In this document: positions 3,057-41,371 of the stretch, piece after piece
Layout: the number at the start of each line of letters is the position of its first letter
Numbering within the stretch: position 1 is the first letter of the stretch
Assembly (NCBI GenBank): GCA_021613535.1
Contig: CP075492.1
Span: forward strand, 9,734,001-9,798,000
Direction of reading: 5' to 3'
DNA: 64,000 nt
From: Adineta vaga
Lineage: Eukaryota > Animalia > Rotifera
Program-made: the position numbers and the translations under genes
The notes under the pieces: model-generated
The model's input: the letters and a program-made list of their open reading frames with translations, nothing else
The model's database searches: none
What the model was told of the DNA's origin: nothing

Positions 3057-6000
3057 TTAACTGAAAAAATATGTCGAATCAAGAACACTATCTAACTTGA
3101 AAGTACCACGGTGCGGTACACGTCGAAGTGTATCATTTAGTAGTTTCATTGTTTTTTTCTGATTTTCATCACCACGAGAATATTCACTACAAGAAATAAA
3201 TTACTTTTGTTTTATTTTTCGATTTTAATTTTAATTTTTACCTGGATTTAAATTCATATTTCGAAAGAAAATCTCGGGAAAGTATTTCAAGTAATGGTTC
3301 GTTATGTAAGGAAACAAATTGTTCACGACAATATCGACTGAGACGATCAACATCACATGATGAGTCCAAAACGAATCATGAACAGAAACAAATGTAATAC
3401 CATTTCGTGCACATTGTAATGCTGTCATCATCATATGTGTTGAATCAAGAGAATGAACATAATTCGGTGGAAAAGCATTCTTTTGTTTGATATGATTTGG
3501 ACGACTAGAAGAATGAGAAAGATATATTTTCATCTCTATCGAACATTATACAATTCAATTTGAAATACGTACGCAAAACTGCTGAAATTATCATAGATAT
3601 CTTTGCCTTTTTGCTAAAGTAAAACAAAGATTAGAAATAAAAAATGAATGACATATGACAAGAAAGCACATACTCGTATTCTCATTTCTCTATAGTATGG
3701 CTGAACAACTGGTAGGTTTAATGGAGTATTCCATTCCACTGCTGAACCACGTATACGTGAAATTAATCCTGCACACTCATTAAACCAATCCTAAGAAAAA
3801 ACACAATACGTCGTTCTTTTTTATCAAAATATTGAATCTGTAAAATCTATTCACCTGAATTTTTCTTGTTTCTCGAAATAATTCTCGTAAACTATATAAT
3901 GTCTTTTGTGCTAAATAACTACTTGCTTCAGAAACAGATTCTTTAGGAAAGCCGTCAATATCTCGTAATTGTCGACCGATTTGTTGTCGAGCACCATATA
4001 ACGTAACACCATAATTTGTTGTCATAATTGTTTGTTTAATTACTTTACGTTTAACAAAACCTTCAAGAATTTTTGCTATTTGAACATTATTTTCTGCATC
4101 TTGTTGACGTTCTTTTTCAACTTGATCAACGACAACACTATAAACATCTTGTGGTAAAGCACTTGGTTTCAAATTAACCGATGCTGCACCCGCATCATCA
4201 AGACCCATTGCTGCATAATGTTGTAAAACATTACATGATCCATCCTAAATTCATCACAAAAGATAATAAATCAACAAAATTCATTTCTTTTCTTTTCCCA
4301 AATCATACTTGATGAACAGGAAAATGCGAAATATATTTTGTATGATCTGGTGATCGTATTGCACGTGCGATTTCCATACAACAAGCTAGTGTTTGCCATG
4401 GTTCTTCAGATTTAGACCACCATTGACGACCCTAAATGGAATATGAATTCAATTTCAAAGAAACTTTCTTTTTACATACAGTCAATGGTTGATCAGCTGA
4501 ATCGAGAATTTCATCCAAAATCTCATCAGCATATGCAGCACGTTCATCAATTGATGCTTTTTTCTTTAGATCAGTTAAATTAACTAGATGAATCTTCAAT
4601 CGACGAAGTCCATCCGGACCTAATGGTTTGCCTTCAGCAAAGAGAATAATACTACGTGCAATATCACTGCCTAAATGATTGAAATGTGGAGGTACAGGAT
4701 AGACTCGACCACGAAAATCCATATTATGTGGAAACCAAAAGATTTCATTTCGAAACTAAAATACAATGCATCATTCATTGATTTTATCATTGAAATTTAT
4801 TACATACACGATTAGCAATCGATAATCGATAAAGTTCATAGCACCATAAAGAAAATAATTCTGACTTGTGTTTTTTCATTTGACTTATAGCAATTTCGCG
4901 TCGTTTACGTTCATCAATTGATAAACCCTTACATTTAGAAATATAAAATAAAGTTATCGAAATTTTATACAACATACTTTCTCTAATGGAAGTTGTTCAG
5001 CAAACTGAGTATTTTCAATCGATACAGGAACAGAGAGTTGACGGTTACCACCACGTTGGAAAATATCCATTAATAAATCAAGTACACCGGTATTAATTTT
5101 CCACGGACAACTATTTAGAACATTGATTGAATCAAGTAGACCACCGATTTTTTCAATTGGTAAAGATCGAAGACGAGCATCTTGTTGACCAGCAGATATA
5201 GGTAATCGAACAAAATCCGTTTGATTTAATAGATAACCACCTGTTGTTGAAGATAACCAAGGAAGTGGTGGAACAAAACTCGGTAATTCCGTACAATCGA
5301 ATTCCAGTTCAGTTTGAGGAATATGTGAAAAGAAATGAATGACTGTTGGATGAATCTAGAAACAAAATCTATCAATGTGTTGACGAACAAAAGTTTCAAT
5401 GAACATACTTTGATCTGTTTTTCAGTGAAACTACCCGGAGTACGATAGACAACATACAAAACTGAATTAGCATTTCTAAAGAGAGAAAAAACGTTCATGT
5501 CTAATAGAACATAGTAAACTTGATGAAACAAATTAAGCACGACATCCAAAATTTAATTTATCATCAAATTCTCTTACAGAAATATAGAATAATTTAGGAT
5601 TTCCTCTTTTCATAGTCTTTATATATATATATTACTTTTTATTTTCTTTCGGTCGTTGCGTAGTAAGTAATGGTACATTAAGTTTCATATGTTTTAACAT
5701 AACATCATAAAGAAATTCTCCAACTTGTATTACTTGAACATATGCCCATGGTCGATCACCTCGATCCTAAACAATTCTTACTATAATTATTTCATAAATA
5801 TTCATTCATACCATATATGCAAAATTCTTTTTTACAATTTCATTCCATTTTTGTCTTTCATTGACACGAAATCGCTCATCTGTTACCACATATTTCGCAT
5901 ATTCATCATAACACAAACGTAATTTATCGATAAATCCATTCTTTTGTCTAATGGTACATAGATACTTTTGATATAAACGTCTTCCAAGTCCAATACAAAG

Positions 6001-11264: not shown

Positions 11265-13444
11265 ATGGAGCAGACATCGTCAGCAGGTCCGGTACAAATC
11301 GTATCCATCACAGAAGATCATAAATTCGTACTCGATGAAAAGAAATTAAAACAAATATTATATAATAAACGAGCAATTGGCAAAAAGGTTCGAGTCTTTT
11401 CATAGAAAAATTAGATTATTTGATTAGTTTCACTTGTATCTTAGATTGGACTCGTTTCAATTGCTGGCGATTTTCGTAAAGGAAAATCGTTTATGTTGGA
11501 TTTTTTTCTTCGTTATTTACGTGCGAAGGTAAAACATTATTTCTCAACCTTGTGAAATCGAACATCTGCTTGTCTAATTTCAGGACAATAAGGAATGGAT
11601 CGGTAAAGAAACTGAACCTTTGGGAGGTTTTGATTGGCGTGGTGGAGCAACACGACATACAACAGGAATGATAATGTGGAGTGAACCATTCACTTTAGTA
11701 TTACCAAATGGAGAAGAAGTATAAAATCTACTTTTGACACTTTTATTTTCGAACAAAATCTTTCTTTGTTTTCTCATTTAGATTGCTGTTTTCCTAATGG
11801 ATACTCAAGGAACATTTGATTCCAATTCAACTGTTTTTGAAAATGCATTTATATTTGCATTAACATTACTTGTTAGTAGTGTAACTGTATATAATATAAT
11901 GCATAATTTACAAGAAGACAATTTACAACATTTATCATTTTTTGCTGAATATGGTGTCTTAGCAATTGACGCTTATCATACATCACCCTTCCAAGTTTGT
12001 TATAAGAAGGAAAAGCAAAGAATTTGATATGACATATCGTAAATTTTTCTTAATAGCAATTAACATTTCTTGTACGTGATTGGCAATTTGAATATGAAAC
12101 AGCGTATGGTTTTGAAGGAGGAGAAGAAGTTCTTTCCGATCGATTGAAAGTATGAAGAAAAATTCTAAAAATCTTTCATTCAATTTCGTCATGATTTCTA
12201 TTAGATCCGTGAAAATCAACATCATGATTTAGAATTAGTTCGTTCACGTTTACGTCAATGTTTTCGTAAAGTAAATTGTTTTCTTATGCCACATCCTGGT
12301 CTTAAAGTAACGAATCGAAAAGATTTTGATGGACGATTATCAGGTTCGATAAAAACATTTGATGGTTTTTTGTCAATTTGATTCCATTGTTTAGATATCG
12401 AAGACGATTTCAAAAAACAATTACAAGTCTTAATACCAGAACTATTCCGATTGGATAATCAATATTTTGTAAAAGAAATCAATGGAGAACAGATCACGTC
12501 TACAGATTTATTCGAATATTTTCGAGTATGTTCAATATCATTCATTCATTATATCTATTCACTTTTCTTTTCAGAGTTATTGTGCTGTATTCGCTTCCGG
12601 AGTGTTACCATCACCAAAAGCTATGTTAGAAGTATGCATCTTTTTTTCTGGATGATATCATTTGCCGTGTTCGATATATGAATGATTTTTCGCGATATTT
12701 CTAGGCCACAGCTGAAGCGAATAACTTAGCAGCTAAATCAACGTCTAAAGAATTTTATATTCGTGCAATGGAACAGGTAAATAGTTTAAGGTATTGAAAA
12801 CTATCTATGTTTTTTTCTGTAAAGCATTGTGGTGGTGATCGACCATATATTCATCCAAATCAATTAGATGTTCTTCATCAAGAGGTTCGTCGACAATCGA
12901 TCGAGAAATTTCGTTGTGCACGTAAGATGGGTGGTGAACAAATGTCTCAAAGTTTTCTTCTAGAACTTGAAAATGAATTAGCTGAACTCTATGGTAATTG
13001 ATAAAACATCCATCGATTTGAGTTTATCAAACATTTCTTTCTTTTAGCAAATTATAAAAAACATAATGATTCCAAAAATGTCTTTGCATTCAGTCGTACA
13101 CCAACAACTTTCATATCTACAATGGTTATATGTTATTTAGTTGCTGGTTTACTCGATACTTTCTGGCTTGGAGGAGTAAATTTTATATTTATGTTTGCAT
13201 TTTGGGTTTGTTTCGCTCTATTATTTGTTTGGTTGTACACAAAATATTCGGGAGAATATGCTGAAATGGGTGAATATATTGATCATTTTGCCGATGTGAT
13301 TTGGAACAATGTAAGTTATAGGAAAAGTTCGAAAACATTTTTAAAAAATTTGATAATTTGTATTTTCAGGGATTTCAACCAGTCTATTCGAAATGTTTAC
13401 AATCTGCTATGCGTTCTGTGCTTGGACATGCGAAAGCCGATTAG
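11265..13444 (+). CDS. ATL: Atlastin (ER-fusion dynamin-like GTPase), multi-exon
   Basis: P-loop [49 protein letters not shown], then two hydrophobic segments followed by KYSGEY. Confidence 0.96.
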
Positions 13445-16400
13445 AATTTTCTTTCTTTTCTTCATTTCAATGTTGCGTTAATAATTGACCCTGTCTTATT
13501 TCTTTTTCTTTTTGACATTAACATTTCTTGGTTTGTTTATTTTCTTCCGTTTATTCTTGCGCGATTTTCATTTTCATTTTCTCTCGTTCAAAACTAGTCG
13601 AGGACTAGGATGACAGAAGTAAGAACTGTTCATTTACACTTTCTATGCTGACTGAACAGTCGAGCACAAGATCTCTCTTCGCTTTCGCAGACAAGTGATT
13701 TATTCCCATAGTTTTTTTTCTTCTTTTGTGTGTGTGTGTGCGTGCGTGTTTTATTTCTTCCTTTTTTTTATACATATGATGAATATATATGATGACGAAA
13801 TGGTTCATTCGATTTGATTTACAAGAAGTATTATTTGCTTGAATGAAGATCAATGGCAACTTGATATTGTTGAAATTTTCGAAAATTTGTATAATAATCA
13901 ACTCATTTATAACCATGAATGACCGTTACTAATAGTCATTCACAGTTATGAGGTTGTTCGATAAATTGATTGTGAACGTTAGTCATGGTGAAGATGTCTA
14001 GTTCTCATGATGACATAAGTTTTTATTTTATAATAGAAAACAAAGCAATGACATTTAAAATATTGAGAATATGTTGATTGAATATAACATTTATAATCAA
14101 TAGTTTTATTAATTGATCTGATATTTAATAATAATAATAATAAGAAGAAGAAGAAGAATAACGTATAAATGAAAACATTTTCTGATAAATCTGTTAGTAA
14201 TTTTAACATAAATTTAATGGTTTGATTATGTAAATAATCATGAGCTAAACTTATCTCTTCTTCGAACCATTAGAATTGATTGATAAGAAACAACAATTGA
14301 TTCCATCATTGTCGATTATATTATAATCGTTTCCATTATCATTACCTTCATTCGAAGGTAAAGATCATTTCGAGGTAAGAATGATATGATTAGATCATTT
14401 TATGAATAGCAATGAAACGATAAACAAGTATACCGATATGTTCCTAGTCGGTTCAATCGAGTCTTTTCAGAAATACATTTTTTTAATTTTTACTTTAAAA
14501 AGAAATTTTCCGCATAAATGATATTAATAGAAAAGTCGTATTTAAAACATATTAATCTACAATCAAAAATAACGCTTCTATAATTTACAATTTCTAATTA
14601 AAAGTAGCAGAATCTACATTCCATGAAGGCATCTTTTCTTTTATGAATAGAAAGAAGGTCTAAGCGAACATATTTTAAAACAAGAATAGCTTTTCTTCCT
14701 ATAATCTTTTCCTATAGAGAAAAAAAGTGAAACATTTTTCGAATTTGTACAGCAAGACGATAACATATTTTCGTATCTCGAACTGAATAGATAAGTGTAT
14801 CTGTTTTTCTTCTGTTTCATTTATTCAAAAAGAATATATATAATAACAAACGTACGATAGAATAAAACAATTCGAATATGTCATCTGGTTATAATCATAT
14901 CCAGGTAAAATCTATAAATAATTCATTTTTTCTTTAATTAAACGAAATCATTAGTCGAATATGTTTCGTCCATATTTTTGAGAAATTTATTATTTATTAT
15001 TTGTGATCGAGATGTTTTTTTCTTGAAAACAAAGAAGATAGACAATATGTTTTATTCAACATATAATAATAGTAGTTAGTTTATTTCTCGTATTTATATA
15101 TATATTTATTTATTGGAGCAGAAAATTACTCTTTTCTTAAAAAGAATCGGTTTTCTTCTCTCTCGCTTTTGCTTGAAAATATCAATGTGATAGGTTTATA
15201 CATTCCAAATGAGTTCATTAGGATATATATCGAAAGGATTTACCGCACCTAGATAATTAACTATTTTATCACTTAAGGTTAAAAAACAAATCTGCTTTCT
15301 ATACATCGTATAGAAATGACTATTTAAATAAAATATATCCCTTTATGATGTACTTCACTTAATCAACATGTTTATATACAAATATTAGAACACGTGGAAT
15401 CATTTAGATTCATGACTTGAGAGACTAACATCGTACTCTTCTTGTGTTCTTTGTTTACTAGACTTGTGAATATTCTTTGTTATTTTCCTGTCACTCGCTG
15501 GAGTGTTTAGCGTTGAATTGCGAATGCAAGAAGAAAAAGAAGAAGGAGAAGAAAAAAAAGACACCGAGAAAGAAAGAATCGACCAGGCTAACGATGAGAC
15601 AAACTTAACGTAGGAAAACGAGTACTAGAATCATTGTTGACAAGAAGTAAGTTTTTGTTTTCCTCTTATGTTCATTAAAATATAAAATGTTTTTCTATAA
15701 ATAAAAATGACAATGATATCTTGCTCGTTAGTAATATTCAATTCAAATATTATCTTCCAGGTTTGTCGTGATAATAAACGAGTAATCTGAATCTTTCTCT
15801 CTCTTTCTCTGTACCTGGATATGAGTAAAGACATAGATATTTGTTCATTCATCAAAAGCATTTCATCTGATAAGATCTAAATAAAGTATCTTTAGTGAGA
15901 ACAGCAGTGTATATATTTATTCATATATATATATATATAGCGTCCATATTTTTGTTTTCGAATAGGAAATTCAAATTATTATATGTAACATATGGTTGAA
16001 TGTTTTTATTCTTTTGGCTTTTGTAAAAACGAGGTTATCCATTTACTTTTCTTTAGCGACATCTAGATTTTAGAAGTAAATCGAAAATATCTTTCTTAAA
16101 TTATGATTTTCATTAATAAGAATAGTTTCTAATGAGTTAATTTAAAGAAATTTTTTGTATTTAAAGAAGCGACATCTATAATAAGTGTACAGTTGTATAC
16201 ATGTCTTCAATATTGAAAAGTAACAGACAGTCAGAAAAAACTGATGTGATGTTTTTTATTGGAAATTTCGTCATTAATTCGTCATATATACATATATATC
16301 ATGTTTTTCGTAGTCAAAAACATTCGCTCGAAAGATTGACTAATACAACTAATCGATCAAATCTGTCAGATATTTATTTATTGATTTATAATTTCGAAAT

Positions 16401-23026: not shown

Positions 23027-24880
23027 TTAAATCCCATTGCTATCTGGAGAATGATCGGATTCATCATCCATTGGTTTGTCTTTTGTTTCAGGAAGAAATA
23101 AGGAAAATAAAAGAGCAATAATACCCAAAACTGATGATACATAATATGTATAGGATAAATATTCCTTGCCAATTAATGTACCTATTACTGGTGCTAAAAT
23201 AGCACCGATACGACCAAATGCAATACAACATCCATTGGAAGTACTTCGTATCGATGTTGGAAATAATTCAGGAATAAATATCCATGTTATAGTGATGGTA
23301 ACTGATATAAGATATTTGCCTAGTTGAGCCATAGATACCATTGCAATTGAACTATATTTCTCAATGATTGGTATTAGAAAAACAGAGAGTATAGTTAAAC
23401 TCATCAGTATAATAAATGAACCTTTACGACCAAGTTTAGTTGATAAAAGTAAAGAACTTGTAATATAACTAATTGCTTCAACTACGGCGCCAATTAAAAT
23501 TGCTAAATACGGTGAAACATCCATCGTAGCTAGACCATAACTAATTTGAAAATAAATCATTACTGTTGTTAAACTTATTAAACATGTTATGAATAGTTTT
23601 AATATTATTGCTCGATATGTAACTAATCGACAAGTATGTCGAAAAAATGATACATTATGTTTATGTGTCGATATAACTGGTTGATTACGTAGTAAATCTT
23701 GATAATGTGAATACCATTCATTTTCTTTTCGTCCATTTTGATTTGCTATTTGTCGAAGAAGACTTTCTAAGTTACTATATTTTCCTTTTGCATAGAGATA
23801 TAAAGGAGATTCGGGTATGAAATAAAGATAAGGTATTCCCACTCCTAAAAAGAGAAGATTGGCCCATTTTAAATGTTGCCAATGTCGTGTTAAATAAGCA
23901 AATAACGTTACGATAACTTCACCGATAGTAAATGATATAAAAGCAAGATTTCCTGCAAGACTTGTATGTGCTGATGATGTTAATTCAAACATTAAAATAA
24001 AAACTAAACTGAAATTTGATATGCTTAGACCGGATGCAAATTGATTGAATAATAAAATCATAAATCTAATCGAAAGGTGAAAACTATTTCTATTCTTTTT
24101 CTTTTTAATCAAATAAATTTACTTCGTTTTGATTGTCATCGGTATCCATTGCATAATTATTTGAGTAGTTAAACAAGATATAAAAAGAAGAATACTAATG
24201 ATAACTGTAAGTTTCTTTCGGCCATATTTATCTGCTAAAGAACCAATAACTAACACTAAAAAGCCACTAAATTGTATAACAACTGCTAACCAACTTTTTC
24301 GAGCTTGATTTTCACAAACAAAATTTGCTTCTTCAGTAAAAGTATATCCAAATATTGATCGATCATAGACCCAACCATTTGAACATCTTTCAAGTGTATG
24401 ATTAATCATATCTGTTGAATATTGTACACATTTTTCCCATTTTTGACCGGAACTACTTTTTGGAATATACATATTGATATACATTTCATGCATTGAATTC
24501 ATTGGATTATATTGTGTATCATTTGGCCAGATATGTTCTGGTAATCGACATCGATGATCAGGTTCTGCAGCACCAAAAATATAATAGAATGAAACAATAC
24601 CAAAACTCATCGCTATCCAATTCATAAAAAAGTAATGTATCCATTGAAATCGACCAAAATCACCACATTTTCGCAAAATATCATCGAGCGAATTCACCGT
24701 TATTGCTAATGAAGATAAACTTCGAGTAATCTCGGTTTTCTCCACCTATTTAAACATATGATGTATAAGTCAATGATAGTGACAAAAAAAAACAATAGCA
24801 AATAGATATTGACTTACATATAGGTTATTCTTGTTAACATCTACATGTATCAAATCGCCTTCACTTTCGTACTGAGTCAT
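23027..24880 (-). CDS. SLC22-family organic cation/anion MFS transporter (3 exons)
   Basis: DDILRKCGDFGRFQ, Cys-rich loop with CSNGWVYD, LADKYGRK, PESP and ELFPTSIRS motifs, and many TM segments. First exon MTQYESEG (ATG 24880) ends at gtaagt. Confidence 0.92.
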
Positions 24881-26140: not shown

Positions 26141-26458
26141 CTAATTAAATTTTTCTAATAAATATAAAACAATATTTCTGTGACCAAGATAGACAGCTAT
26201 ATGAAGAGGAAGCCAACCATCATCATTGATTGTCAAGATATCACATTCACCATATTCAACAAACAATTTCAATAGATCAAGACGATTGTATAAACAACAA
26301 AGATGAACTAATGATTGACCATTGTATTGTAAACGATTGAGATTGATATTATTGATTCGTGAAGATTTGAGAAGAAGAATTTCGATATCGAAAATATCAT
26401 GATTGTGAAGAATGGAGTTGAATAGACGATGAGCGAATTGATGTCGATCGAGAATCAT
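26141..26458 (-). CDS. NRARP: NRARP-like small ankyrin-repeat protein, copy A (105 aa, ends LLEKFN)
   Basis: Size and motifs (GQSLVHLC..LDLLKLFVEYG..DGWLPLHIAVYLGHRNIVLYL) match Notch-regulated ankyrin repeat protein as I recall it. A splice acceptor lies 5 nt before the ATG. Confidence 0.78.
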   Translation of the reverse strand: MILDRHQFAHRLFNSILHNHDIFDIEILLLKSSRINNINLNRLQYNGQSLVHLCCLYNRLDLLKLFVEYGECDILTINDDGWLPLHIAVYLGHRNIVLYLLEKFN

Positions 26459-26466
26459 ATTTTCTA
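26157..26466. repeat. Left arm of a 310-bp perfect inverted repeat (partner 32150..32459)
   Basis: The reverse complement was compared base by base with 32150..32459 and no mismatch was seen. Confidence 0.95.
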
Positions 26467-27349
26467 TACAATGAAAACACGAAAAGAGAAGATAGATATA
26501 TATATATACGTAGGAAAAGAGAAAAGAAATGAAACGAATGAGAAAATTTTTTTTTCAATCATTTCTAATTGTCAGCTAGGTGAGAACGAAAAGAAGAAGA
26601 AGAGATCAAATAACTTTCGCTTCGTTTGATGGAAACATCTGTTTATGTGTATATTGAATTGTAAAGACGAAATGAATACTAATGGGAAAAGATTGTCTAA
26701 TCCAATAAAACTCTAATGACTAGTAGAAGATATTTGAGTAGAACTCTTTATCCGATCATTTTGTGTACATTTCATGTTGACTGTGAGATCCGCCTTGTCA
26801 CTTCTCTGTAATTTAACACCTTTCAATATTATATAGTGAGATATGCTTTTCAATTTCTCATTCTCATGCTCTCACCATTCGCATCATCATCATTATTGCA
26901 ATCAGATCTTATTTCTCATAAACACACATTCCCTTTTTTTTCTACACTTGCTAGCTAAAAGACAATATTTATCCATTTTTTTTCAAGTATGTTTTTCTAT
27001 AATTATACGATTGAAGACAAATGATCCAATCAATCGGTTTTCTTTTTTTCGTTTATGTTCGATTCGATCTTATCGATAAAAGAGAATCCGATGACGTCGA
27101 TTGTGAAGGTTAATTCTTCATTTGTAATTTCCGTTCGGAAACAATATTTGAATGTCACGAACGATACCTTACTTCGAGTCAATTCCGTTCGAACGAGAAA
27201 ATCTGATTGAATGACCCAGCAAGGTAACGACTATACAACATTGTTTAACTATCTTTCAATAAACATGACGGATCTGTACTTTTCGATGTATTTCAATTGA
27301 AAAGAAAAATTAAAATAGAAATATCACAAAACAAACAAAAAACTATGTC

Positions 27350-29638
27350 CTATAATGGATTTGCCTTCTTCAAATTGTCATGTATTGATGTATGTAGACA
27401 TTGTCCAGGTAGAAAATCATTCTCTAAATCATGTTCATCACTATCTGCTTGATCATATCGTAAACGATCGATTTGATTTTCTGATTTTGATGTTGTTACA
27501 TTACCATTGATTGTACGTAAATCTCTTCTTGAACGTCGCAATGAAGTTTGAGAAATTGTTCTTCGTAATGATGTCCATGACATATTTCGTCTCCATGTCC
27601 ATGTTTCATCATATTCTCTCATTTTATATTGAAGACCATTTAATAAAGCCATAACAAGGATTAATAAAATAATAAATATTCCAAGAATAATTCCAATAAC
27701 AAGACCTAAATTATTAAAAACACGTGTACGAACAAAATAAGTCGATGATGGATATGATGAATAATTATATGAACAAGAAAGATAATTTATATCATAAACT
27801 TGTTGTATTAAAGCATTATCAATTTCGTGATAATTTGTTATTGACGATGGATTAGTTGAATTCGTATTCAAATCAGTTAAAGATTGAAGAGTTGAATGAC
27901 ATATATGTTCTTTTTGAGTAAAATGACATTCATCCATTTTTCGTGCTGTTTCATGACCAGATAAACTACGAATACAGGGAATTAATTGTCCATCTAATTG
28001 ACCAAGTTTATAAGCAAATAGTAACGGACATGTACATAATGTTGTATTCGAATTTGGAAATAACCATGGTATTGTACGAGGAGCTTCATAGATAAGACAA
28101 GAACCACTAGATAAGTGTTTAAAATGAAATTGTATTGACGATCGTTGATTACTAAAATAAAGCAAGATTGATCTTTTCCGAGAATGCATAGGGAGTAGAC
28201 TAATCCATTATCGTACATTTACTCCCTTGGAGAAATCATGTGAGTACAGTAACAGATATGAATTTATATCGTTTTCACATGAGTTCTTCATGTGAAACTA
28301 TACTTGAAAAATTCTTATCACTAAACTTGATATTAGTGTGTTTACTTACGCAAGATTATTTTCAATAGATTTAAACCATTTAACATAACGTATATGATTG
28401 AAATGTATGTTCATATCTGTTTTAATTTGATTGGAATTTAATGATGATAAATCTATTAATACAATATCTCTCAAATAAATATTATGAAGCAAAGAATCAA
28501 GTCGTAAGGAATTGTTTTCAAATCGTACGATTGTAGTTGATGATAAATTCAATGTGATTAAACCTGAATTCATCGATGAAAAGGTATCTCTTGCAAAATT
28601 AATAATAGGATTTGGATCATTCGTTGGATTATCTGAATTGATTTTCAATTGATTTTTTGCATTGTTCAAAGATATATTGTAAAATGTATTGGAAAAAAAT
28701 GATAATCCACGAAGTGTATTGAATGTCAATATAATTTTAATATTTTCACTATTCATCATCGAATAAATCCGATCGAATGTATATGATTTTAAACATAAAC
28801 ATGAACCTAATGTTTGAATGGTGAAATTAAATATTGAATTCGTTGCTAAAGACATATTTTGAAATGTATAGGAATCCATAGTTAAACGATTTAAAAATAA
28901 TGAATAGAACCGAAATGAACTCGATGTTTCTAATTGTAAAGATTTAAAAGAATACGGTTTTAAATTAATATGTGAAATGAGTTCAAAATGAAATGAAAGA
29001 ATTTGATTAGAATGTAGATTTAAAGATGAAAATGAATAGGAATAAAATAAGATTGTGTCCGTACGAGAGAAAAGAAACTCGATTGACGAAGTTAAATCAC
29101 TTGGTTCAATGATATTATTATGAAACTGAATTTGAGTAACAGATGAAATATCAATAATTAAACGAGAATGTTTACCCATTCTTATACCAGCCAAAGAATT
29201 TGAATGAAAAGTGCAACCATAGAAGAATTTAATAATTAAACGTAACGTTGAATAAGGTTGAAGTTCAAGACCATGAAACGTATTTTCTGTAATATTTAAC
29301 CAAGAATTAGGTGCTGCAAATGTAATTGTTAATGTATGGTTGGGTTTTTGTACGATAAACGATTGAAATGCATATGGTTGGAAAATTAATTTCAATTGTC
29401 CACTTAAGATCATATTCGTATCACGTGAACCCAAATTAAAATCTGCAAATGCTCGTGCAGGAATTGTTGTTAATTGTGTTAAAATAATATCACGATATGA
29501 TAAACAATCAAAACAATTTGATGGAATATAATCGAATACTCGTGGTTCATAATCATTTTGATATAAGACGGTCGATTGGACGACAAGAATTAGTGAAGAT
29601 AGTAGTAAAAGAATGTTGCTGTCAAGGTTATAAATCAT
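27350..29638 (-). CDS. Type I membrane protein with degenerate leucine-rich-repeat-like ectodomain (2 exons)
   Basis: Signal peptide (ILLLLSSLILVVQS), recurring units such as IPARAFADF, FQPYAFQSF, ITENTFHGL, LKPYSFKSL, an LRRCT-like LCTCPLL, and TM LGLVIGIILGIFIILLILVMALL. A phase-2 intron (gtaagt at ~28349 to ttttag at ~28152) joins the two ORFs in frame. Confidence 0.82.
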
Positions 29639-32149
29639 GTCATCGGTTCATTTAAGAATAATGAGAAATTCTAAACGCAAAAAAAAGAAGAAGAAGAAGC
29701 AATTGTCGAAAATCAATCATCGCCTCAAGCGTATAGGAAAAACAATGCACTAAATCAAGGCTATTTCGTTCATAGCTTTTATCGTGCCGTCAATTGAAAA
29801 AAAACGTTTTTTATTCATGTCATGATTTCTAAAGCATGGGCAGATTGGTCGTTTTGAATGCTGATTTTCTTTTTGCTCTTCTACATTCTGAAAATGTTGC
29901 ATGACACTGTCAAAAAGTTCAGTGGGGAAGCAATAAGCAGTTTTTCTCTCTTCTTACCATCAATACAGAGAATACTTCAAAAAAAAAAGAGAAGACTCTT
30001 TCTCTCTCTCTCGTATCCACTTAGTTGACAGCAAAAGGAAAAATCTCGATAGGTCCTATTTTTTTCTTACTCGCACTCACTCTGTTCTTTACGTTCATTA
30101 TTAATTTCCTTTAGTGTATGAGTTCTAAGCTTTTTTTCTCTTTCTCTCTGTTGGTCTCTTTCATCATTCACCTATTCATTATTGTTGTTTAGTGTCTTAG
30201 CGGCAAAGGAAGAGAGAGAGAGAAGAAAATCTCTACGATGATCACTTCTTGATATAAGAATAACAAAATAAAAAGAAAGAAAAACAAGAATGGACAGCAA
30301 AAGAAGAGTGTCAAATGAAATTAACTGGAATGGCATTGTTTCTCTCTCTCTCTTTCTCATTCTCTGTCTATCTATCAATATAAACATATTCATGTGTTTG
30401 TCGAGTAGTAGTGCTGCTAAACTATCGGATTGAGTTATGGAATTTTTTGTTCTTCTTCTCATTCATTGTAATGCATGAAAAAACAAAACGAACGAGAAAT
30501 AGAGATACTAATTATGAACTTTGAGACTCATTGATCTCCCAAGCGATTATTTGTCCTAGAGATCGTTCAAAATGCCATAGAAATACGCATTAGATTAATG
30601 AAGAAATATCAACCTAGATAAACATCTATTCTATGTATTATTGTTCATATAAACAAGGTGCATAATTAGACTTTTTTCTTCTCAGTCAAACAACGAGATA
30701 AAACAGCTAGGCTGGATACTTTTTAACAATGTTATTTTCATGAGAATACTCATTCTAATTGTACAAATACGGCTTGAATCATGCCAATCGAATCAATACT
30801 TGATTTCCTATCTAGGTAAGATAGTAATTACAAAGATATCGAACTTTTGATTATGATTATAAATCTCTATCATCATGATTTCCTTAATAGTTTTCTTTTT
30901 CATGTAAAAAAACGCAACATACTTACAGAGAATATTTGAACATCGATTAAATCTGACTTATGGTCGAACAATCTGTAAATATTATACTAAACTAAAACGT
31001 ATATATCAAGAAGAAGAAAGAAACCAAATACGTTCTCGCACTTCATCACATCAATATCTCATTTCAAGAAATAAATAAAGGTGATGAGAGAAGGAGATAT
31101 TCATCATTATCATGAAAATCGATTCGCAATAGAGGTAGAAGGGATATTTCGAGTCTAAAGTGTCACATCAATAATTTAAAGTAATTCAGCATGAAAGACA
31201 GAAAAAACGGAAATAAATTTCGCACGATAATGCAAGACATGCGTCAGTCAAAATCATCAATTCTATTTCAAGTAATCATCTTTATGACTATACAAACAAG
31301 AAAAAAGTTTTGTCTCTTTTCTTATTTCTCCAGACATACTTGCTTTTATTCATTAGTACTGACCATTGCTTAAGATAAAGCACATACACTTGCTTCATTC
31401 TCATAATCAATCAGATAAGAGGAATGAACAGTTGGATGGTCATTTCTTTCGTACAGACTATGAATAGAAGGATGTATGAACTTCCCTTAGAGCTAGCCGA
31501 GCGAATGCATCAAGCTAAAACGACACGCATGGAGATGGAAGAAAAGAGAGGGAGAGTGTGTGTGTGTCTATGTATAATACATAGAATAGAAAATGTTGAG
31601 CAATTATCCATGGAATAGAACTCGTCAGTGTTACTAACATTTCTAGTACAATTTGACTGCAAGGCATTAAATGATGATGTGTTGAATACATGAGAATGAT
31701 ATATGAAAACAGCTCGAAGTCGTTTGGATTTGTATGTTATGATTCGAACAACACTAGTGAATTGTTTATACTGAAATCAACACCTAATGTTATTCGACGG
31801 ATGTTAGACATAAAAAAAAGAATGTTACGGAAATGATTCGTTAAACTATATATTCAGACTTCAAGAATGAAATTTGTAACCTATGCTGTCAATCATCGAA
31901 TTACTGATACGGATCAAGTAGTAATACTTGAACTAGCCATATCATAAGTTTATTTTCTTTTTCATTCTGGGAAAAAGACATCTAGTTCAATGAAGCGATT
32001 AAGTGTTATTTGTATGAGAAAGGATAATATAAGGTGAGAGAGAATGCTCGTTTGTGGTTTCCGGCTTAAAACACCTAAAGCTTATTACATTGAAATTTCT
32101 CACAAGCGATTGATTATAGAAAACAACTGATCATCTTTTTTTTCCTTCT

Positions 32150-32459
32150 TAGAAAATATGATTCTCGATCGACATCAATTCGCTCATCGTCTATTCAACT
32201 CCATTCTTCACAATCATGATATTTTCGATATCGAAATTCTTCTTCTCAAATCTTCACGAATCAATAATATCAATCTCAATCGTTTACAATACAATGGTCA
32301 ATCATTAGTTCATCTTTGTTGTTTATACAATCGTCTTGATCTATTGAAATTGTTTGTTGAATATGGTGAATGTGATATCTTGACAATCAATGATGATGGT
32401 TGGCTTCCTCTTCATATAGCTGTCTATCTTGGTCACAGAAATATTGTTTTATATTTATT
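32150..32459. repeat. Right arm of the 310-bp perfect inverted repeat (partner 26157..26466)
   Basis: Identical to the reverse complement of 26157..26466. Confidence 0.95.
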
Positions 32460-32475
32460 GAAATTTCATTCATGA
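32158..32475 (+). CDS. NRARP: NRARP-like small ankyrin-repeat protein, copy B (105 aa, ends LLKFHS)
   Basis: Identical to copy A except for the last four residues. A pyrimidine tract and AG lie just before AAAAT-ATG. Confidence 0.78.
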   Translation: MILDRHQFAHRLFNSILHNHDIFDIEILLLKSSRINNINLNRLQYNGQSLVHLCCLYNRLDLLKLFVEYGECDILTINDDGWLPLHIAVYLGHRNIVLYLLKFHS

Positions 32476-32931: not shown

Positions 32932-35900
32932 TCACACACGCACCGGAAGAATATAAAGTTGGAATTGTGTTAAACTATTTTTCGATACAAATAAATGCCA
33001 ATCAAGAAAATTTTGATGTGAATATGTATGAGCTGTTTTTGTAGATTGTTCATCAGAATTTCGTTCAGTTTTAGGTGTAATCTTTATATGTGGCATGGAT
33101 GGACGAAGAAAATATCGATTAGGTGGTTTTTGCATAACGGTTGATCGACGTGAACGTTGAATAGATGAACATTGATTAATTTGCAAAGAGATTTGCTCAG
33201 AAAGAGAAAGAAACCAAGCTGTTCGTAATCGTTTGATCCATAGAAGATCAAGTTTAATAGCATGTTGTTCAGCTTCTTGTAAATTTAATTCCCAATTAAA
33301 ATCATTCTAAAATAATAGAAAATCATTTTCAGTTAGAAGAATTCGAAAAAAGATTTCCCAATCGTATACAAACAAAGATATTTGTCTCAATGGAATTATC
33401 AACTAATATTATTTGTTTCTTAATCGATTTTTCTCGTTCTATCACATTTAATGAAATCAATTGTTTTTATCTTCAATATTATTCTTAACCTTCATCCAAA
33501 AGAGTCCTCTATGTTCTTATTAAAATACTGTCTAAACTAAATTCTAACATTGACCTTATTATCTGTCTGTCTTAGGAGAATACTCATCTATTTCTATTCG
33601 ATTTTCATCAAAGTAAGAGACAAGCCGACTAAGCCGATGGCAATAGATGACATACTGACGAGACTGTTGTAAATCGATTCAATCAACTTTTTCATAAGCT
33701 TAGACTTTTTTGTCTTCAAATTTAACAAACTGTTTATATTATAATAAGAAAATTCGAAAGATATTTACATCGATTGGATAGTTTTGTGATCGCTTATAAT
33801 CATTTATAAGTCGATCGTAATACGCTTGATAAATCAAATATCGTGTTCGATTCCATGGAATTAATTCTTCATTAACATGAGTATTAATCATAGTTAATAG
33901 AAAACAATCTTTACTAATATTTTCTTCTGATTCTTTGATATAATACCAATATAATAATTGTGTTTCAATTAATTTTAATAGAGCACGTTTAAAACGAAAA
34001 TCAACAGTTGATAAATGCATTTGATCATATTTTATTTGATGTAAAGCTTGTTGAAAATGTATTTTCGAAAGATTTAATTCACCTAATCGGATATAAATCT
34101 GTGCTAATGTACAATCACTATAGAGAATCAATAAACTTCGTTGATTCGATCCAGTCAAAAGTTTTCTTCGATATTTACTAATATTTTCAAGAAAATCGAT
34201 CGTTATTGGTATTAATTCATAGCCAAGTTCAATAGCAACATCAATAACTAAAATATAATACCAAAGTTTTGCATAACAATTCATTGTTTGTTCACTTAAA
34301 TATTCTAAATGTTGTAGAATTAATTCAATATTTGATATACGCATTTCTCCAATCAATGCTAATGTTAAATTAATACATGTTTCCATAAGAAATATATTTT
34401 CATGATAACCAGTTAGAATTCGTTTAGCCAAATAGCCCGATAGAATGGCGGATTCCAATGAGTTTTGTTTTAATTCAATAATTAATGATAAACTTTTTAA
34501 TTTACCTAATTCAAGTTTTTCACGTGCTGTTACATATGACCACCAAAATTGTATTAAATTATTAATTAACATAAAACATTGATTATAATTCATTTCACAA
34601 TAAAAATATTCAATAAGTATAATCGTACATGGAAGTGAAAAAGAAAGAGGATAAATATGATATTGTAAATTAATTAAAATATTTCGTGTTTCATGCGATT
34701 GATGACGAGATAAATGATATTGAAGAAGATAATATTGACAAATTAAATATTCCATACGATATTGATTAATAAAAGGATTTAATGGATCAATATACTAAAT
34801 GAGTAAATCAAATGAATTGTGAACTAAGAAATTTACTACTTACCGATGTTTGAGAAGTATAACTGAATGTTGATAAAATCTCTCGACTTTGTTCGTATTG
34901 TATTCGTCGATCTTTTACTGACGAAGAATCTGATAAATTAATAGTTGATTTCGATTCTTCCCATGGACGATTTTGATTTATTTCATTTAATTCTTTTAAA
35001 CTTTGTTCGCACAATAATTTCGCATCGCAAATTGCTCTTGTACGTTGTAAAACAATTGCTTCAAAAAGATTATAGGTATATTTCGTAAGAATAGATTGAT
35101 ATTTATAAGTAGAATTATCTTGATTGATGATATCTTGTTGGAATTTATTTAAAAATTTTCTTCCATTTTCGATTTCAACGAGTAAACGTTGAAGACAATT
35201 TGAACGTAATAATAGATAACAAATTTCTATTCGATAATACATAATACGATCAAATTGTTCACCACGTAAATCATCGACTAATTTTTCATACATATCATAG
35301 AGATTTGTATGATATTCTACAAGTTTTGTATACACAGCAAAAACATAATCTGCACATTGACATATACGTAAATCATTGTAGGTAATAAATTCATTAACAA
35401 ATTTATTTAAATTAGCTTCTTCTAATTTCTGTTGTTGTTGAATATCATGAACATAATGGATTAAATTTTTGTATTGAACATAGGATTGAAAAGTATGAAA
35501 TAGAAGAGATTGATCGTATAGTATTTGAAATGTTCGTGTTAAATATATTTGTCGATTTAAACAATTAAGATCATCAGCAATATGTTGCATAAATTCAGAT
35601 GAAAACATAGGTTGTTCAAGTAATTCTTGATCACTAGGACAAGCACGAAGGACTTTATTGGGAGATGGAATTAATACTTGACGAACGGTTTGCCAATGAG
35701 AGGAATACTTGCGTAAAAATTTTGATTCCTAAAATTTTCAGAGATGTACTTAGACTTAGAATGAGTTTTTCAAGGTGATCAAGATGCTCTGTCTTTACCT
35801 GTGATATACTATTGGATTTGGAAGTTATGTGAGTGTCTGCTGTTTCTTTATCAGTTGATTTTCTCATTGATTGATTATTTGTATCTTCAGTTGTCAAGAT

Positions 35901-38900
35901 GGGTGAATGTAATGGCACAATTTGACAGAATATATATCGAAAGAATGATCGAAGACGATGCGATCGACTTTCTCTTCGTTGTCTTGTTCGTTTAACAATT
36001 GTTTCTTTTCTCTGTGTTTTATCTGGTATAATAAATCCATCGATAGTTTTTAACAAACGATTATTCGATAGAGATGCATTGCGAAGACTTTTTTTTGGTG
36101 CCTTAATAAGAGTAATAAAAGGATTTGATTTCGATGATGTTAATGGTCGATGAACATCATTTTGAACGGATGTAGGTGTCAGCTGTGATTCATTGTTATT
36201 ATATGAATAAAGATTAACTATAGGTAAATTTTGATCACTGGAATCACGATGTATGAGTTGTTCAGGTTTGGTTTTAGAAGTATCTTCATTAACAAGAGGA
36301 ATATATGGAGAAAGAGAGAGTCTTGTACGATGAGCATTAAAACCACTTGCGTCGATACTATTACGACGTTTTTCTAGTGTTTTAGTCGGACTAGTAGACG
36401 GAAGGAAACGATATTCGTAAAAATATTATGATTTTTTTTAAAAGATTTTTCACTTCTTTTATTACCTGTTATGTTCATCAACTCTCGTGTTTCCAGCTGG
36501 TGCAGTAATCGGTTCTGGTGGAATATTCGATGATGTATTTGATCTTGGTTTTCTTAATACATTCAGTGAACCTAATCGAATAGATTGTTTAATTGCATTA
36601 TCAATTTCTTTCAATGCAGCTATTTTAACAATATCAACAAATGCATGTTGTTGACTTGTTTTAATAATTTTCGTTAAACCATCTTGTTTTTGAACAAAAA
36701 ATGGTATATCATTTCGTGGTCCACATGTTGAACAAATAATGGTACATTGTTTTTCCAGATAATCAATAGCATGACGTGTTAATGTACGTTTTAAACTATC
36801 TGTTAATGAATTATAGATTCCTTCTCGTATTGATACATGTGCAAATGCTATTAAACGACATTGCGATGGAAAACTTGTTGGATTATGTAAACAGAAACAT
36901 TGAATTGTACGTCCTTTTGGATTTTGTTGTTGTTTATATGCACATTCAATAACTGATCGTTGCATCATATCCAATATACAGGAATTAATATTAATTGATT
37001 TCTTTGAATTTGAATCAACTAATTGCCATAGAAATGTTCGAGAAAATGTATTTCCAATAACAGCAGCTGTTTTAATAAGAAACGTTTCACCTTCGGAAAG
37101 ACGATCAATACGGCACATGATGTAATTTTGAAAATTTTGTTGACAATGAGAAATAACATCATTCGAAGTTGGATCACGTAAAAGACAAATACGAGAAAAG
37201 GTCTGTTCTGATTGACGTTGTTCTTCATTAAGAATTTGTTTTCGACGAGAAAATAATGATTTAAATAAACTATTCTTTGAAGGTAAATTAAGAAGAATTT
37301 TATCAGCATCACCTTCAATTAAATTCAAATCTTGATCATGTTCATCTATTGTATTTACAATATAGATTTTATCTTTACGTAAAAGATCAAATAGAATTTG
37401 TTCACAAAAACCAGGAATACCTATATTCGAGAAACAGAATACAGATTTTTTTTGGACAAATGCCAATAGTTCGTTTCGTAGAGAAATATAAAGTATAAAA
37501 TAGTATTTACCGTTACAACTTTCATTGAAAACTTTAACCAATTTTGCTGGAAGTTTATGTACTGATAATATCTGGCATCCTATAAAAGAATGAAGTGAAA
37601 TTATTTTATCGTTACATAATAGATTCTACCAAGTGTTGCAAGATAACGTGGTTCAAGACCAGGTAATCTTCGTAGATAAACACGTGAATCTGTACTAATT
37701 GTTTGTAATATATCAGAAGCACGTCGATCATTGTTATTATTTCTTGGTGGTTTCATGGAGAGAATCAATAAACATTTACTATGACTACCCAATGTGAGTA
37801 AATGTTTCAGTGAACTTTCATCAGCAAAATGAATGTCATCGATAATAATCAAGATTTTTGATGCTACTGCAATAGGAGATGAAGGTATCATTGATATCGC
37901 ATTTGATGAACGTCTTGATTGAGCACATGATGCACTAGAACGAAAGATTATCCATTAAACTCTCGATTCTCATAGATTTTATTCAATCCGATATCTCAAA
38001 ATCGGATGAAGTTGAATGATCTTTCTTTCTTTCTTTCTTTTTTTTATGTACCTTACTGATGTGCATGTATTTCCATACATATCAGCAATATTAATCGGTG
38101 ATTCAACAAGTTGATTTATAATATGTAATAATAATTCATTAATATTCGTTTCATATGTTCGAACAAAGTTCGTTTCATTACTATTGTCAGTTTCAATATG
38201 ACCACGACGAAATCTGACATCGACTAAATCATTTAATAGAAATAAGTTTCGTCGTAAATATAAATCATTCGATTTGTTTATGTCAAATAAACGTAAGAGT
38301 GATTGTTCACGTTCGTATTGACTTTTTTCATCATTATGAAAATTTAATAATTGTCGAAGTAATGAACGAAGTAAACTGAATTCATTAAAACGTCGTTCTA
38401 ACTGACAATTATATTTAATAATACGTATAATTGGTTTTTTAATTGTTGAACAATCACTACCATATACATGTAATGATGATGAACGATTTGGTAGAATATC
38501 ATTTGTTGTTAGAGGTATACTGTTAGGAATTGTTGAATCATAAGGAATGTACGAATTATCATAACAAGAAACACCTGTACTACTAGTTTCATAGTTTGCA
38601 TTTTCGAATGAATCAGCAATAAACTGTAATAAACGACTTCGACCGATTTTATCATCTCCTAGAATGAAATTATTCTCATATACATAGCATAGATTTTGAT
38701 TATAATTTAAAATATTGGTTCATTTTCTGCATACTATCAAATACTTAATTGTAATATAGGAAAAACTATCACAAATAGAATTACTTCTTCTTTTAGAATG
38801 AGATGTTCGTTTTGTAAAAAAAATTACATAGAATCAAAATTTCTTCAAGATCATTAAAAGGAAAATAGATGTAATCAACGATACTGAATTCAATGTATTA

Positions 38901-41371
38901 ATTTCAACAGCTTCTTTTCCTTTTCCCAAAACTGTCAAGATCAATTGCTGTTTCTTCTCCTTTTTCACTTTCTTGGATTCATTAGAATTTGTTTTTCTAC
39001 CCTCAATTGATTCTCATCAAATGATCTGCGTTTGTAAACACTATCATATATCATCCTAATAACTATCATTTACACATCTGCTATTAGAGCACAAAATCAT
39101 TATTCAAAACATGACAAAAGATACTTTGATAAATGCATAGCTTTCATGACGATGTCTTTATGTTAATGATATGGAAAGTATTCTAGAGCTATGTATTAGA
39201 GAAAAAAAACTAAATTGAATTGGTGTACAAACCCTCAAAAATGATAGCAGCAAGATCTCTTCGTTTATTTTCTGGTTCATCCATTAACATTATTTGTGTT
39301 GCAATTATCATTAATTCTAATTTTCGTCCAAGTAATGGATAATTTCCATTTGAAAGATTAATATTTTCCTTTTGATTCGAATTATTTTGTATTTGTACAT
39401 TATCTTGATTTTCTCCATATTGCCAAATAATTCCCACATTATGCATACCCTAGTAAACCATAACAAAGAAAAAGTCGAGTTGTATCAATTGAACATTGTT
39501 CGTTCTTTACTTTTAATATTTTATCTGGTAAAATTTGAAAAAATCGACTATTTAATCGCGAATTATAGTATGTTTCTTGATCACACGAGATTATATTTGG
39601 ATAATTGCACATTAATCGCGCAGCTAAATTTACTTTTCGACCAATAACTGTATATTCACAACGTGCAACATGTCCCACAACACCACAATAAGTCAAACCA
39701 GTTGCCACCTAACCTAACGTAAATAGTTAAATATTATCACTGAAATGTTAAGTTTAGTTTGTCTTTTCTCTCTCTTTCTTCACAATAAACTTACACCAAT
39801 CGAACATTTATTTATAAATTGACACTGTTTATTGATTGTTGAATGTATCATATGTGCACATTTGAGTGCATTCGCTGTATCATCACCTTGTTTATAACCA
39901 GGTAAACCAAAAACACATAGAAATGACCAACCTTTATCGAATAATAACGCTTTTGTTAATACACCACCCATCATTTTATTTAATTCATAGATTTGTATAA
40001 AAACTTTCTGTACATTTTGACAAAGATTAGTCTCAGCATGTTGTTCATCTGAAATATCCAGATTAATAAATGTGATGGTAACACGTCGTAATTCTGATAA
40101 ATAATCTAGTGATTGTTTACGCTCAATACGTTGATAAACACAACCAAGTAAAAATGATTTCATTAAATTATCAATTTTATCATCAAGTTCTTCATCATTA
40201 CTATCGGCAACTAATGAACAAGAATGTGTTTTTGATTCAATTGAACGATGACCATTAGATAATTCTTGAGAAGATTGATACTTGAAAGAAAAAGAAATTG
40301 AAATTTTTATTTTCTTTCTAATCATGCATCCTATTTGTTTTTTTATTTCTCTCATGCTTTTCGTTTGATACAGTCAGTTCATAATCACTCGTGTGGAACA
40401 AATTAATTTTCGAAGAAAATACGTTTACCTACCATATTATCTTCTTCTGATTCTAAACATTTTACAGCAATATATTGATCATTTCTATCTGATTCATCTC
40501 CAATCGATGCATATTCACAATTTAATGAAAATTTCTGAACTTGTTCATAAACTGCCTTTGTTATAATGATATCTCCAGGTTCACATAATTGTTCACAACT
40601 GTTTACATCTTTAATACAATCACCCGTTAATATATAATGTTTAAATTCGTCTGTTCCGATAAACAATACTCGAACAGATCCATAGGCAATGGCTACTTTC
40701 ATACGTAAAATAACATCAACATTTGTTTCATATGCGCCATATCTTTCTTGTAATGATAACGCACATTTTAATGCTTGTTCTGGTCCATTCGATTCATGAG
40801 TCCATAATGCAAGTATGGCATCACCAGCAAATTTATAAATATCACCATTATGAATTAAAATTTCCGAAACTAATTTATCGAAATATGAATTTAATGTATG
40901 CGTTAGTTGATCAATACCTAAATGGGCGTCATTTGAATATTGTTCTGTTAAAGATGTAAATCCAGAGACATCAAGAAATAATAATGTTGCTTGATTATAC
41001 ATGTGTTCATTTGGAATTAGAATGTTTCCTTGATTATCAATTAAATCATCTAAATTATTTAAAACAATATCTGGAATGTGTGCTTGAACTTGTTGACCGA
41101 TATGAAATCCTTCATCATCGTCATCATTATTCTCTATTTCCTTTTCGTCCTCTTCTTCTTCTTCTTCAGTTGTGTTTTCATTTACTATTGAACCAATTTG
41201 TAAAGTTGCAACAACCATTTTGACTGTATTTGTTGCTAATGATGGTAAACCTCGCGACCAAATACGACGTAATGGTTTCTTCCTTCGAATCTTTTTCAAT
41301 GACGTTTTAGTTTTCGCTTGAATGATTTCCGTAGGTTGAGTAGAAAGAATCTGCCTTGAACTATCCATCAT
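32932..41371 (-). CDS. ADCY10: Soluble adenylyl cyclase type 10-like: two cyclase domains, STAND/P-loop region, long helical C-terminus; multi-exon
   Basis: C1 motifs LLFLDVSGFTSLTE and IYKFAGDAILALW; C2 motifs YLSELRRVT, FDKGWSFLCVFG and EYTVIGRKVNLAARLM. Also Walker B IIIDDIHFAD, GIPGFCEQIL and RIDRLS..LIKTAAVIG. The introns checked splice in frame through to stop 32932. Confidence 0.93.

Follow-up and report, generated by a model that had tools for sequence, protein, structure and literature searches.

Organization of the locus

The stretch analyzed here (the window) consists of 64 kb of chromosome 3 of the bdelloid rotifer Adineta vaga (C3:9,734,001–9,798,000), in a genome of six contigs and 100.8 Mb, and all positions below are counted within it. 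The locus under study contains two small ankyrin-repeat genes that form an inverted repeat around a gene for a predicted membrane protein. The genes are ordered as transporter, ankyrin gene, membrane protein, ankyrin gene and guanylate cyclase, and the two ankyrin genes are referred to as the T twin (transporter side) and the G twin (cyclase side). The T twin was located at 26141–26458 on the minus strand and the G twin at 32158–32475 on the plus strand, each as an open reading frame (ORF) of 105 amino acids, with the C-termini ...LLEKFN and ...LLKFHS, respectively. The left arm of the repeat, which is the putatively converted tract of the T twin, covers 26157–26466 (minus strand) and comprises a leader of 8 nucleotides (nt) and ORF nt 1–302. 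The right arm, the corresponding tract of the G twin, covers 32150–32459 (plus strand) and is a 100% complement of the left arm over 310 nt. Between the arms, the membrane-protein gene occupies 27350–29638 on the minus strand, as determined from two ORFs and an intron junction in contigs of probable RNA runs. The T twin lies in tandem with this gene, 0.9 kb downstream of it, while the G twin is divergent from it at a distance of 2.5 kb. Both twins point outward, so that both of their upstream regions lie inside the 5.7-kb interior. These regions include a T-side upstream spacer (26467–27349, minus strand) and a near-invariant non-coding block of 148 nt located 5' of the G twin (31963–32110, plus strand).

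Pfam analysis revealed that both twins match ankyrin-repeat families only, with Ank_2 covering residues 25–103 (E-value of 9e-13 for the T twin and about 1e-12 for the G twin). An earlier note on this DNA had described the twins as NRARP-like. The size (105 against 114 amino acids) and the presence of ankyrin repeats alone in both proteins agree with that description, and NRARP (Notch-regulated ankyrin repeat protein, PDB 6py8 chain B) could be aligned over nearly its full length (residues 10–103 against 15–106, E-value of 8.8e-13). The resemblance does not appear to be specific. NRARP ranked approximately 42nd among the matches, below dozens of generic ankyrin proteins, and ankyrin arrays and DARPins outscored it by far. 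The Atlas neighbours of the twins were generic ankyrin clusters, and all 63 of the 63 full-length sequence relatives were bdelloid or metagenome proteins.

Identity and limits of the inverted repeat

Direct comparison of the arms revealed 310 nt of 100% complementarity, synonymous sites included as had been claimed, at a spacing of 5683 nt. This is the sole inverted repeat of at least 80 nt in the window, and a search of the whole genome found the arm sequence only in these two copies and in one inverted pair on chromosome 6 (C6) at 73% identity. The identity begins at TAG|AAAAT, 8 nt 5' of the ATG, and extends to ORF nt 302; residues 1–101 of the twin proteins are identical and are followed by EKFN in T and KFHS in G. 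These limits are those described in the earlier note, which had placed the identity between the TAG at 26466/32150 and a few codons before the stop. The flanks of the arms were likewise said to be unalignable, and alignment of the T flanks against the G flanks gave z values of 0–3 at this locus (a maximum of about 8 in any locus). Among three Adineta species, the T-type tails read E/D-K/R-F-N/K and the G-type tails read K-F-H/N/S-S. The resemblance between EKFN and KFHS extends over about 12 nt with K-F in common, and a vestigial homology of that length between the twin tails is plausible.

The arms could be further assessed in two DNA runs from different studies (X1 and X6). In both runs, the arm was recovered as a single 286-nt unitig without any variant, and its depth was about double that of the neighbouring sequences (67.4 compared to 34–39, and 80.3 compared to 32), and many heterozygous sites were present in the interior in the same runs. 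The arms are identical in these independent data, apparently in both haplotypes, over at least 26181–26466, and because the unitig ends at 26181, one of the four copies may carry a variant near 26180. The read-level data consist of Logan contigs, which break at the arm edges and cannot bridge an exact repeat of 310 nt. Run X1 also had a loose end at 32150 that resembled a structural variant; its sequence belongs to C2:6516104, and it is more probably a cross-match.

Homologous loci in bdelloid rotifers

In A. vaga, chromosome 6 is the homoeologue of chromosome 3 (PMC8494291). The C6 locus (L006), where one homologue is named A. vaga I4U23_029205, contains the same trio of genes and the same flanking cyclase-like gene, and its arms of 302 nt are 99% alike to each other and 73% alike to the arms on chromosome 3. 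A protein search retrieved 63 relatives of about 105 amino acids, all of them from bdelloids or metagenome contigs, with the named sources being A. ricciae, A. steineri, Rotaria socialis, R. sordida, R. magnacalcarata, R. sp. Silwood-1 and R. sp. Silwood-2. The fetched loci demonstrated one architecture, consisting of an MFS transporter, an ankyrin gene, the membrane protein, an ankyrin gene and a guanylate-cyclase gene. The trio occurs beyond A. vaga in A. ricciae, A. steineri, four Rotaria species and bdelloids from metagenomes, and in Rotaria an amidase gene is inserted on the transporter side. Arms of 302–324 nt with 96–99% identity were found in A. ricciae, A. steineri (both homoeologues), Silwood-1, Silwood-2, R. 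magnacalcarata and metagenome contigs; the exception was a lineage from sludge (L024), the arms of which are approximately 83% alike.

Two side observations concern single species. In R. magnacalcarata only (L046–L053, at about 12877–16230), a gene for a Tc1/mariner-type transposase (HTH_Tnp_Tc3_2, DDE_3) lies beyond the amidase gene. In A. steineri, L009 (GCA_905250045.1) differs from L010 in that it lacks both the G twin and the cyclase gene to the left of the membrane-protein gene, and runs of N at 4256–4282 and 7722 indicate that this is probably a scaffold misjoin.

In the protein tree, Adineta and Rotaria were present in both a C3-type and a C6-type clade. Because of this distribution, the inverted pair is, judging from these sequences, older than the divergence of Adineta from Rotaria and also older than the paleotetraploidy of bdelloids. 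The twins had previously been described as old paralogues and not as a fresh duplication, which agrees with the occurrence of the same trio on C6 and in both genera.

Concerted evolution of the twins

A maximum likelihood tree based on ORF nt 1–291 also resolved two deep clades, C3-type and C6-type, and within it the twins of one locus were sister to each other in nine of ten loci with 99–100% support. The synonymous divergence (dS) between twins was 0–0.11, compared to 0.74–0.88 between A. vaga and A. ricciae or A. steineri and 0.90 between the C3 and C6 loci, with a ratio of nonsynonymous to synonymous divergence (dN/dS) of about 0.1–0.27. The flanks were compared in ten loci using 300 nt upstream and 250 nt from ORF nt 296 onward. 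Both the 5' flanks and the 3' tails and flanks clustered by side across species, with z values mostly between 10 and 150; the lowest same-side value, about 3, came from the most distant pairs of 3' tails. The T and G flanks of one locus were unrelated (z mostly below 6, with a maximum of about 8). In all lineages, the tract begins 0–24 nt before the ATG and ends at about ORF nt 291–302, which is approximately codon 97–101.

Two lineages are informative about how the identity may be maintained. The arms of R. magnacalcarata are mosaic, with every mismatch located in nt 74–255 and identical ends, a pattern that conversion in short patches would produce. Between the twins of the sludge bdelloid L024, dS has reached 0.83, and most of the differences are found at third codon positions. 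Because these twins have drifted so far, selection at the protein level alone would not keep the nucleotide identity. A comparison of paralogues within a genome with orthologues between genomes had been proposed earlier as the test for conversion; it was carried out here, and the tree, the dS values and the clustering of flanks by side all favour conversion. The nucleotide identity of the twins as a product of recurrent short-patch gene conversion is thus strongly supported by the sequence comparisons, and the suggestion that the coding exon is kept identical in this manner fits the low dS between twins (0–0.11) against 0.74–0.9 between loci or species.

The interior membrane-protein gene

The interior gene could be resolved into exon 1 (29638–28350), an intron (28152–28349) and exon 2 (28151–27350) on the minus strand. 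The intron junction 28151/28350, with GT..AG on the minus strand, was present in contigs of the probable RNA runs X15 and X16. The product is conserved among bdelloids and has about 696 amino acids with a predicted signal peptide and one transmembrane helix. Pfam searches of the separate exons did not identify any family at an E-value of 0.01 or lower, nor was a family recorded for any orthologue, and as regards leucine-rich repeat (LRR) families, the Atlas gave only weak feature matches (0.78–0.83).

A structural model of the interior protein was built from an alignment of 12 orthologues and gave a beta-solenoid with a predicted local distance difference test score (pLDDT) of 83.8 and a predicted template modelling score (pTM) of 0.82. 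It superseded a single-sequence AlphaFold model of poor quality (pLDDT of 52). The best structural matches of the model were right-handed beta-helix proteins (Z of 15–17, mostly with a root-mean-square deviation (rmsd) of 4–5 Å), and these lookalikes are bacterial or phage proteins such as PfbA, RbmB, VacA p55 and tailspikes. LRR ectodomains reached Z values of 13–14.6 with an rmsd above 8 Å, and TSHR reached a Z of 12.9 at 3.8 Å over 226 residues. Foldseek did not return a significant match with the model. The interior product is predicted to be a single-pass membrane protein, and its ectodomain is confidently modelled as a beta-solenoid. It had been proposed as an LRR membrane protein; the LRR part was not confirmed, as there was no LRR match in Pfam and beta-helix proteins gave the best fold match.

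Upstream regions of the twins

The T-side spacer at 26467–27349 aligned with the other T sides (Ari_T, z of 98.9; Ast_T, 49.4; E18_T, 26.8), while its z value against the G side was below 2. On the other side, the block at 31963–32110 lies 48–195 nt upstream of the G twin and is single copy in the genome. In an alignment of A. vaga, A. ricciae, A. steineri and a metagenome bdelloid, 123 of the 151 columns of this block were invariant and pairwise identities were 87–98%, despite near-saturated synonymous sites in the adjacent ORF. An RNA gene was considered for this block and was not borne out, as no Rfam match, no covariation and no fold signal (z-scores of +0.4 and -0.5) could be detected. 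The block contains ATG...AAG|GTGAGA, a possible short first exon with a donor near 32034/32035, and may represent a promoter, a 5' exon plus donor or another element.

A contig of RNA run X15 matched the genome at 26310–26465 and continued with 13 non-genomic letters, in gene sense TCAAATTGAAGAG. As the arms are identical, either twin could be the origin of the contig. These letters were absent from the window at up to one mismatch and were no commoner than chance at three mismatches. In the genome, 16 scattered matches were found compared to 8 for a control, and the flanks of the matches were unshared except for one duplicated pair on C6. A published bdelloid spliced-leader sequence for comparison was not found among the papers searched. 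Candidate sources of the 13 letters are a spliced leader, a first exon located far away and a chimera at the contig tip. A splice acceptor had been proposed at the start of the tract, and it gains one support from this contig, which leaves the genome at 26465/26466. In all species, the T twin is placed in tandem 0.2–0.9 kb downstream of the membrane-protein gene, an arrangement that would suit co-transcription followed by trans-splicing.

Orientation of the interior

The arrangement in which the 3' end of the membrane-protein gene adjoins the T twin was designated as orientation A. It was observed at the C3 and C6 loci of A. vaga in a long-read chromosome assembly, in A. ricciae and at both homoeologues of A. 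steineri. Orientation A was also present in Silwood-1 (three assemblies), in R. magnacalcarata (eight assemblies) and in four bdelloid loci from metagenome assemblies. The longest exact run shared by the arms of R. magnacalcarata is 97 nt, so reads can phase the arms in this species. In all ten of the loci compared, the T-type upstream region and the T-type tail were found together. This linkage would have been randomised if flipping were frequent and neutral, and its constancy counts against such flipping.

Flanking genes and other features of the window

The transporter gene (23027–24745, minus strand) was assigned to the MFS/Sugar_tr type from its ORF, Pfam and the locus gene tables, and it marks the T side in all species. 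On the G side, the marker in all species is a large gene with several exons and a guanylate-cyclase domain (33739–41371, minus strand; PF00211 at 40406–41371). Elsewhere in the window, a tandem array with a unit of 78 nt and about five copies, the core of which is 92–94% alike, was observed at 56452–56841.

Probable gene conversion between the arms

The arms are best understood as the coding tracts of ancient inverted ankyrin paralogues which have been homogenised separately in each locus by recurrent non-allelic gene conversion without crossover, a reading to which we assign a probability of about 0.9. It accommodates what could be seen directly, namely the identity and its limits, the age of the pair, the clustering of paralogues in the tract and of orthologues in the flanks, and the conserved orientation. 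Recurrent conversion would keep about 300 nt of the ORF near-identical in each locus, and it would proceed from DNA to DNA in short patches. The most plausible route would be the repair of double-strand breaks with the other arm, 4–6 kb away, as the template, presumably by synthesis-dependent strand annealing. The missing crossovers may be due to the short homology, to selection or to both. The limits of the tract would have been frozen in place, as the neighbouring sequences were probably unrelated before the homoeologues split and each may now be under its own constraint. Because the sequences on both sides are already unrelated and each is separately conserved, the tract could not spread. 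As conversion is not accompanied by fixed inversions, the upstream region, the last few residues and the 3' flank would all remain specific to each twin.

Several points weigh against this reading. The conversion history is reconstructed from present-day sequences, and no event was caught directly. The pair does not seem indispensable, because one C3-type locus (L023:6616–7744; ENA ERZ26165376 ctg355279) has lost the G twin and kept the T twin and the membrane gene. In both A. vaga and A. steineri, the tract has its 5' limit at a probable splice acceptor, and an RNA-templated route would also fit the 5' part of the tract. The assemblies of Silwood-2 are split in orientation, with L020 and L021 in the common orientation and L011, L012 and L019 inverted. 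The inverted segment runs from arm to arm at 99.5–99.9% identity. In L011, there is a single N at the outer arm edge together with an unrelated left flank; in L019, the arm contains a single N, and the sequences on its two sides overlap by about 45 nt; and the contig of L012 starts inside the arm. The Silwood-2 arms share an exact run of 201 nt, which exceeds the usual short-read length (an assumption, as the library type was not checked). This conflict can be due to scaffolding ambiguity or to a real inversion polymorphism, the latter being rather unlikely. If both orientations were real, crossovers would sometimes accompany the exchange. That the 5-kb interior is truly present in both orientations in Silwood-2, with exchange between the 300-nt arms occasionally resolved as a crossover, appears doubtful. 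Such a case would represent a natural inversion polymorphism that re-pairs two upstream regions with two C-termini and 3' untranslated regions (UTRs), and A. vaga with its perfectly identical arms could flip likewise after DNA breakage.

The earlier note had gone further and proposed a recombinase-free invertible cassette, in which crossovers between the arms flip the 5.7-kb interior and re-pair the upstream regions with the C-termini and 3' UTRs. The geometry would permit this, with outward genes and both upstream regions in the interior, and the disagreement among the five Silwood-2 assemblies (two common, three inverted) is in its favour. However, a single orientation was found in every reliably assembled locus and the T-type upstream region always accompanied the T-type tail. 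All of the discordant Silwood-2 assemblies, which are linked-read scaffolds, have an N or a contig end in the arm. For each protein, the effect of the inversion would be confined to the final four residues and the 3' UTR. In agreement with the statement that the window encodes no recombinase, recombinase and transposase families of Pfam were absent from its 13 ORFs of at least 220 amino acids, smaller or spliced genes being outside that scan. A switch of this kind is thus very unlikely, and no good evidence for flipping of the segment between the twins was obtained.

A conversion templated by mRNA or cDNA, the other route that had been raised, would have the spliced transcript of one twin repair the other, and the identity would then start at an exon boundary. 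The tract does start at such a site in A. vaga (TAG|AAAAT) and A. steineri (TAG|AAATT), and the RNA-run contig leaves the genome exactly at the tract start. However, such a template would carry the tail and the 3' UTR of the donor, and yet both are side-specific in all lineages. The other loci start 0–24 nt before the ATG without a common rule, and the mosaic of R. magnacalcarata fits short DNA-to-DNA patches. An RNA template is very unlikely.

An artefact of assembly or polishing, by which slightly different arms were collapsed or a palindrome was mis-scaffolded as in the 2013 draft of A. vaga, also deserves consideration, as the palindromes of that older assembly (AV13) were shown to be artefacts (PMC8494291). 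This is hardly credible for the present locus in view of the variant-free unitig with about twice the flanking depth in two DNA runs, the heterozygous interior, and the recurrence of the structure in over 20 assemblies obtained independently from other bdelloids. The possibility that the exon was duplicated in inverted form only recently in A. vaga, in which case 100% identity over 310 nt would reflect youth, can practically be dismissed, as two bdelloid families and the homoeologous locus on C6 have the same pair with the same synteny, and the flanks cannot be aligned between the twins yet are conserved with the orthologous flanks.

If the reading as recurrent conversion without crossover is right, the locus would serve as a compact natural recorder of homologous repair in bdelloids, which are textbook ancient asexuals whose use of homologous repair is an open topic. 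A tract of 300 nt would have been homogenised independently in at least 10 loci or lineages, beginning before the genome of bdelloids doubled, with no crossover product fixed and with similar tract limits everywhere. The locus also offers an assay of a size suited to the polymerase chain reaction for the ratio of non-crossover to crossover ectopic repair. In addition, the analysis marks a conserved three-gene unit, in which two near-identical small ankyrin proteins surround a predicted beta-solenoid membrane protein.

Comparison with known systems

Near-identical arms maintained by intrachromosomal conversion are also seen in the ampliconic palindromes of primate Y chromosomes and in the inverted repeats of plastids. 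Those arms extend over kilobases to megabases and include non-coding DNA, and plastids flip between isomers. In contrast, each rotifer arm corresponds to one short ORF and no flipping was shown. Invertible switches, such as site-specific invertons, the FLP/2-micron system and plastid flip-flop, resemble the locus in that inverted repeats bracket regulatory DNA. They differ from it in that the rotifer locus had no recombinase among the scanned ORFs, that A. vaga gave no evidence of a second orientation, and that the orientation is conserved across lineages.

The closest parallel can be found in the Drosophila gene pairs Amy-p/Amy-d and Hsp70Aa/Hsp70Ab, which are palindromic and subject to ectopic gene conversion (PMC3924832). 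These pairs are older than the species that carry them, and the paralogues of one genome resemble each other more closely than orthologues of different genomes do (PMC3924832). In Amy, concerted evolution is limited to the coding sequence while the flanks evolve independently, and inversions, the products of crossover, were not seen (PMC3924832). The rotifer pair likewise consists of closely linked inverted paralogues with a higher similarity within genomes than between orthologues and no fixed crossover products, with a mosaic tract in R. magnacalcarata and an apparent lapse of conversion in L024. It differs in the length of the tract, which is about 300 nt compared to 1.5–2 kb and ends a few codons before the stop, and in that the twins enclose a third conserved gene. 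The rotifer pattern is also present in both homoeologues and in two families of ancient asexuals, and it extends over a far deeper time. The locus thus represents the same phenomenon as the Amy and Hsp70 pairs and involves no new mechanism, but is an unusually deep and clean new example of it.

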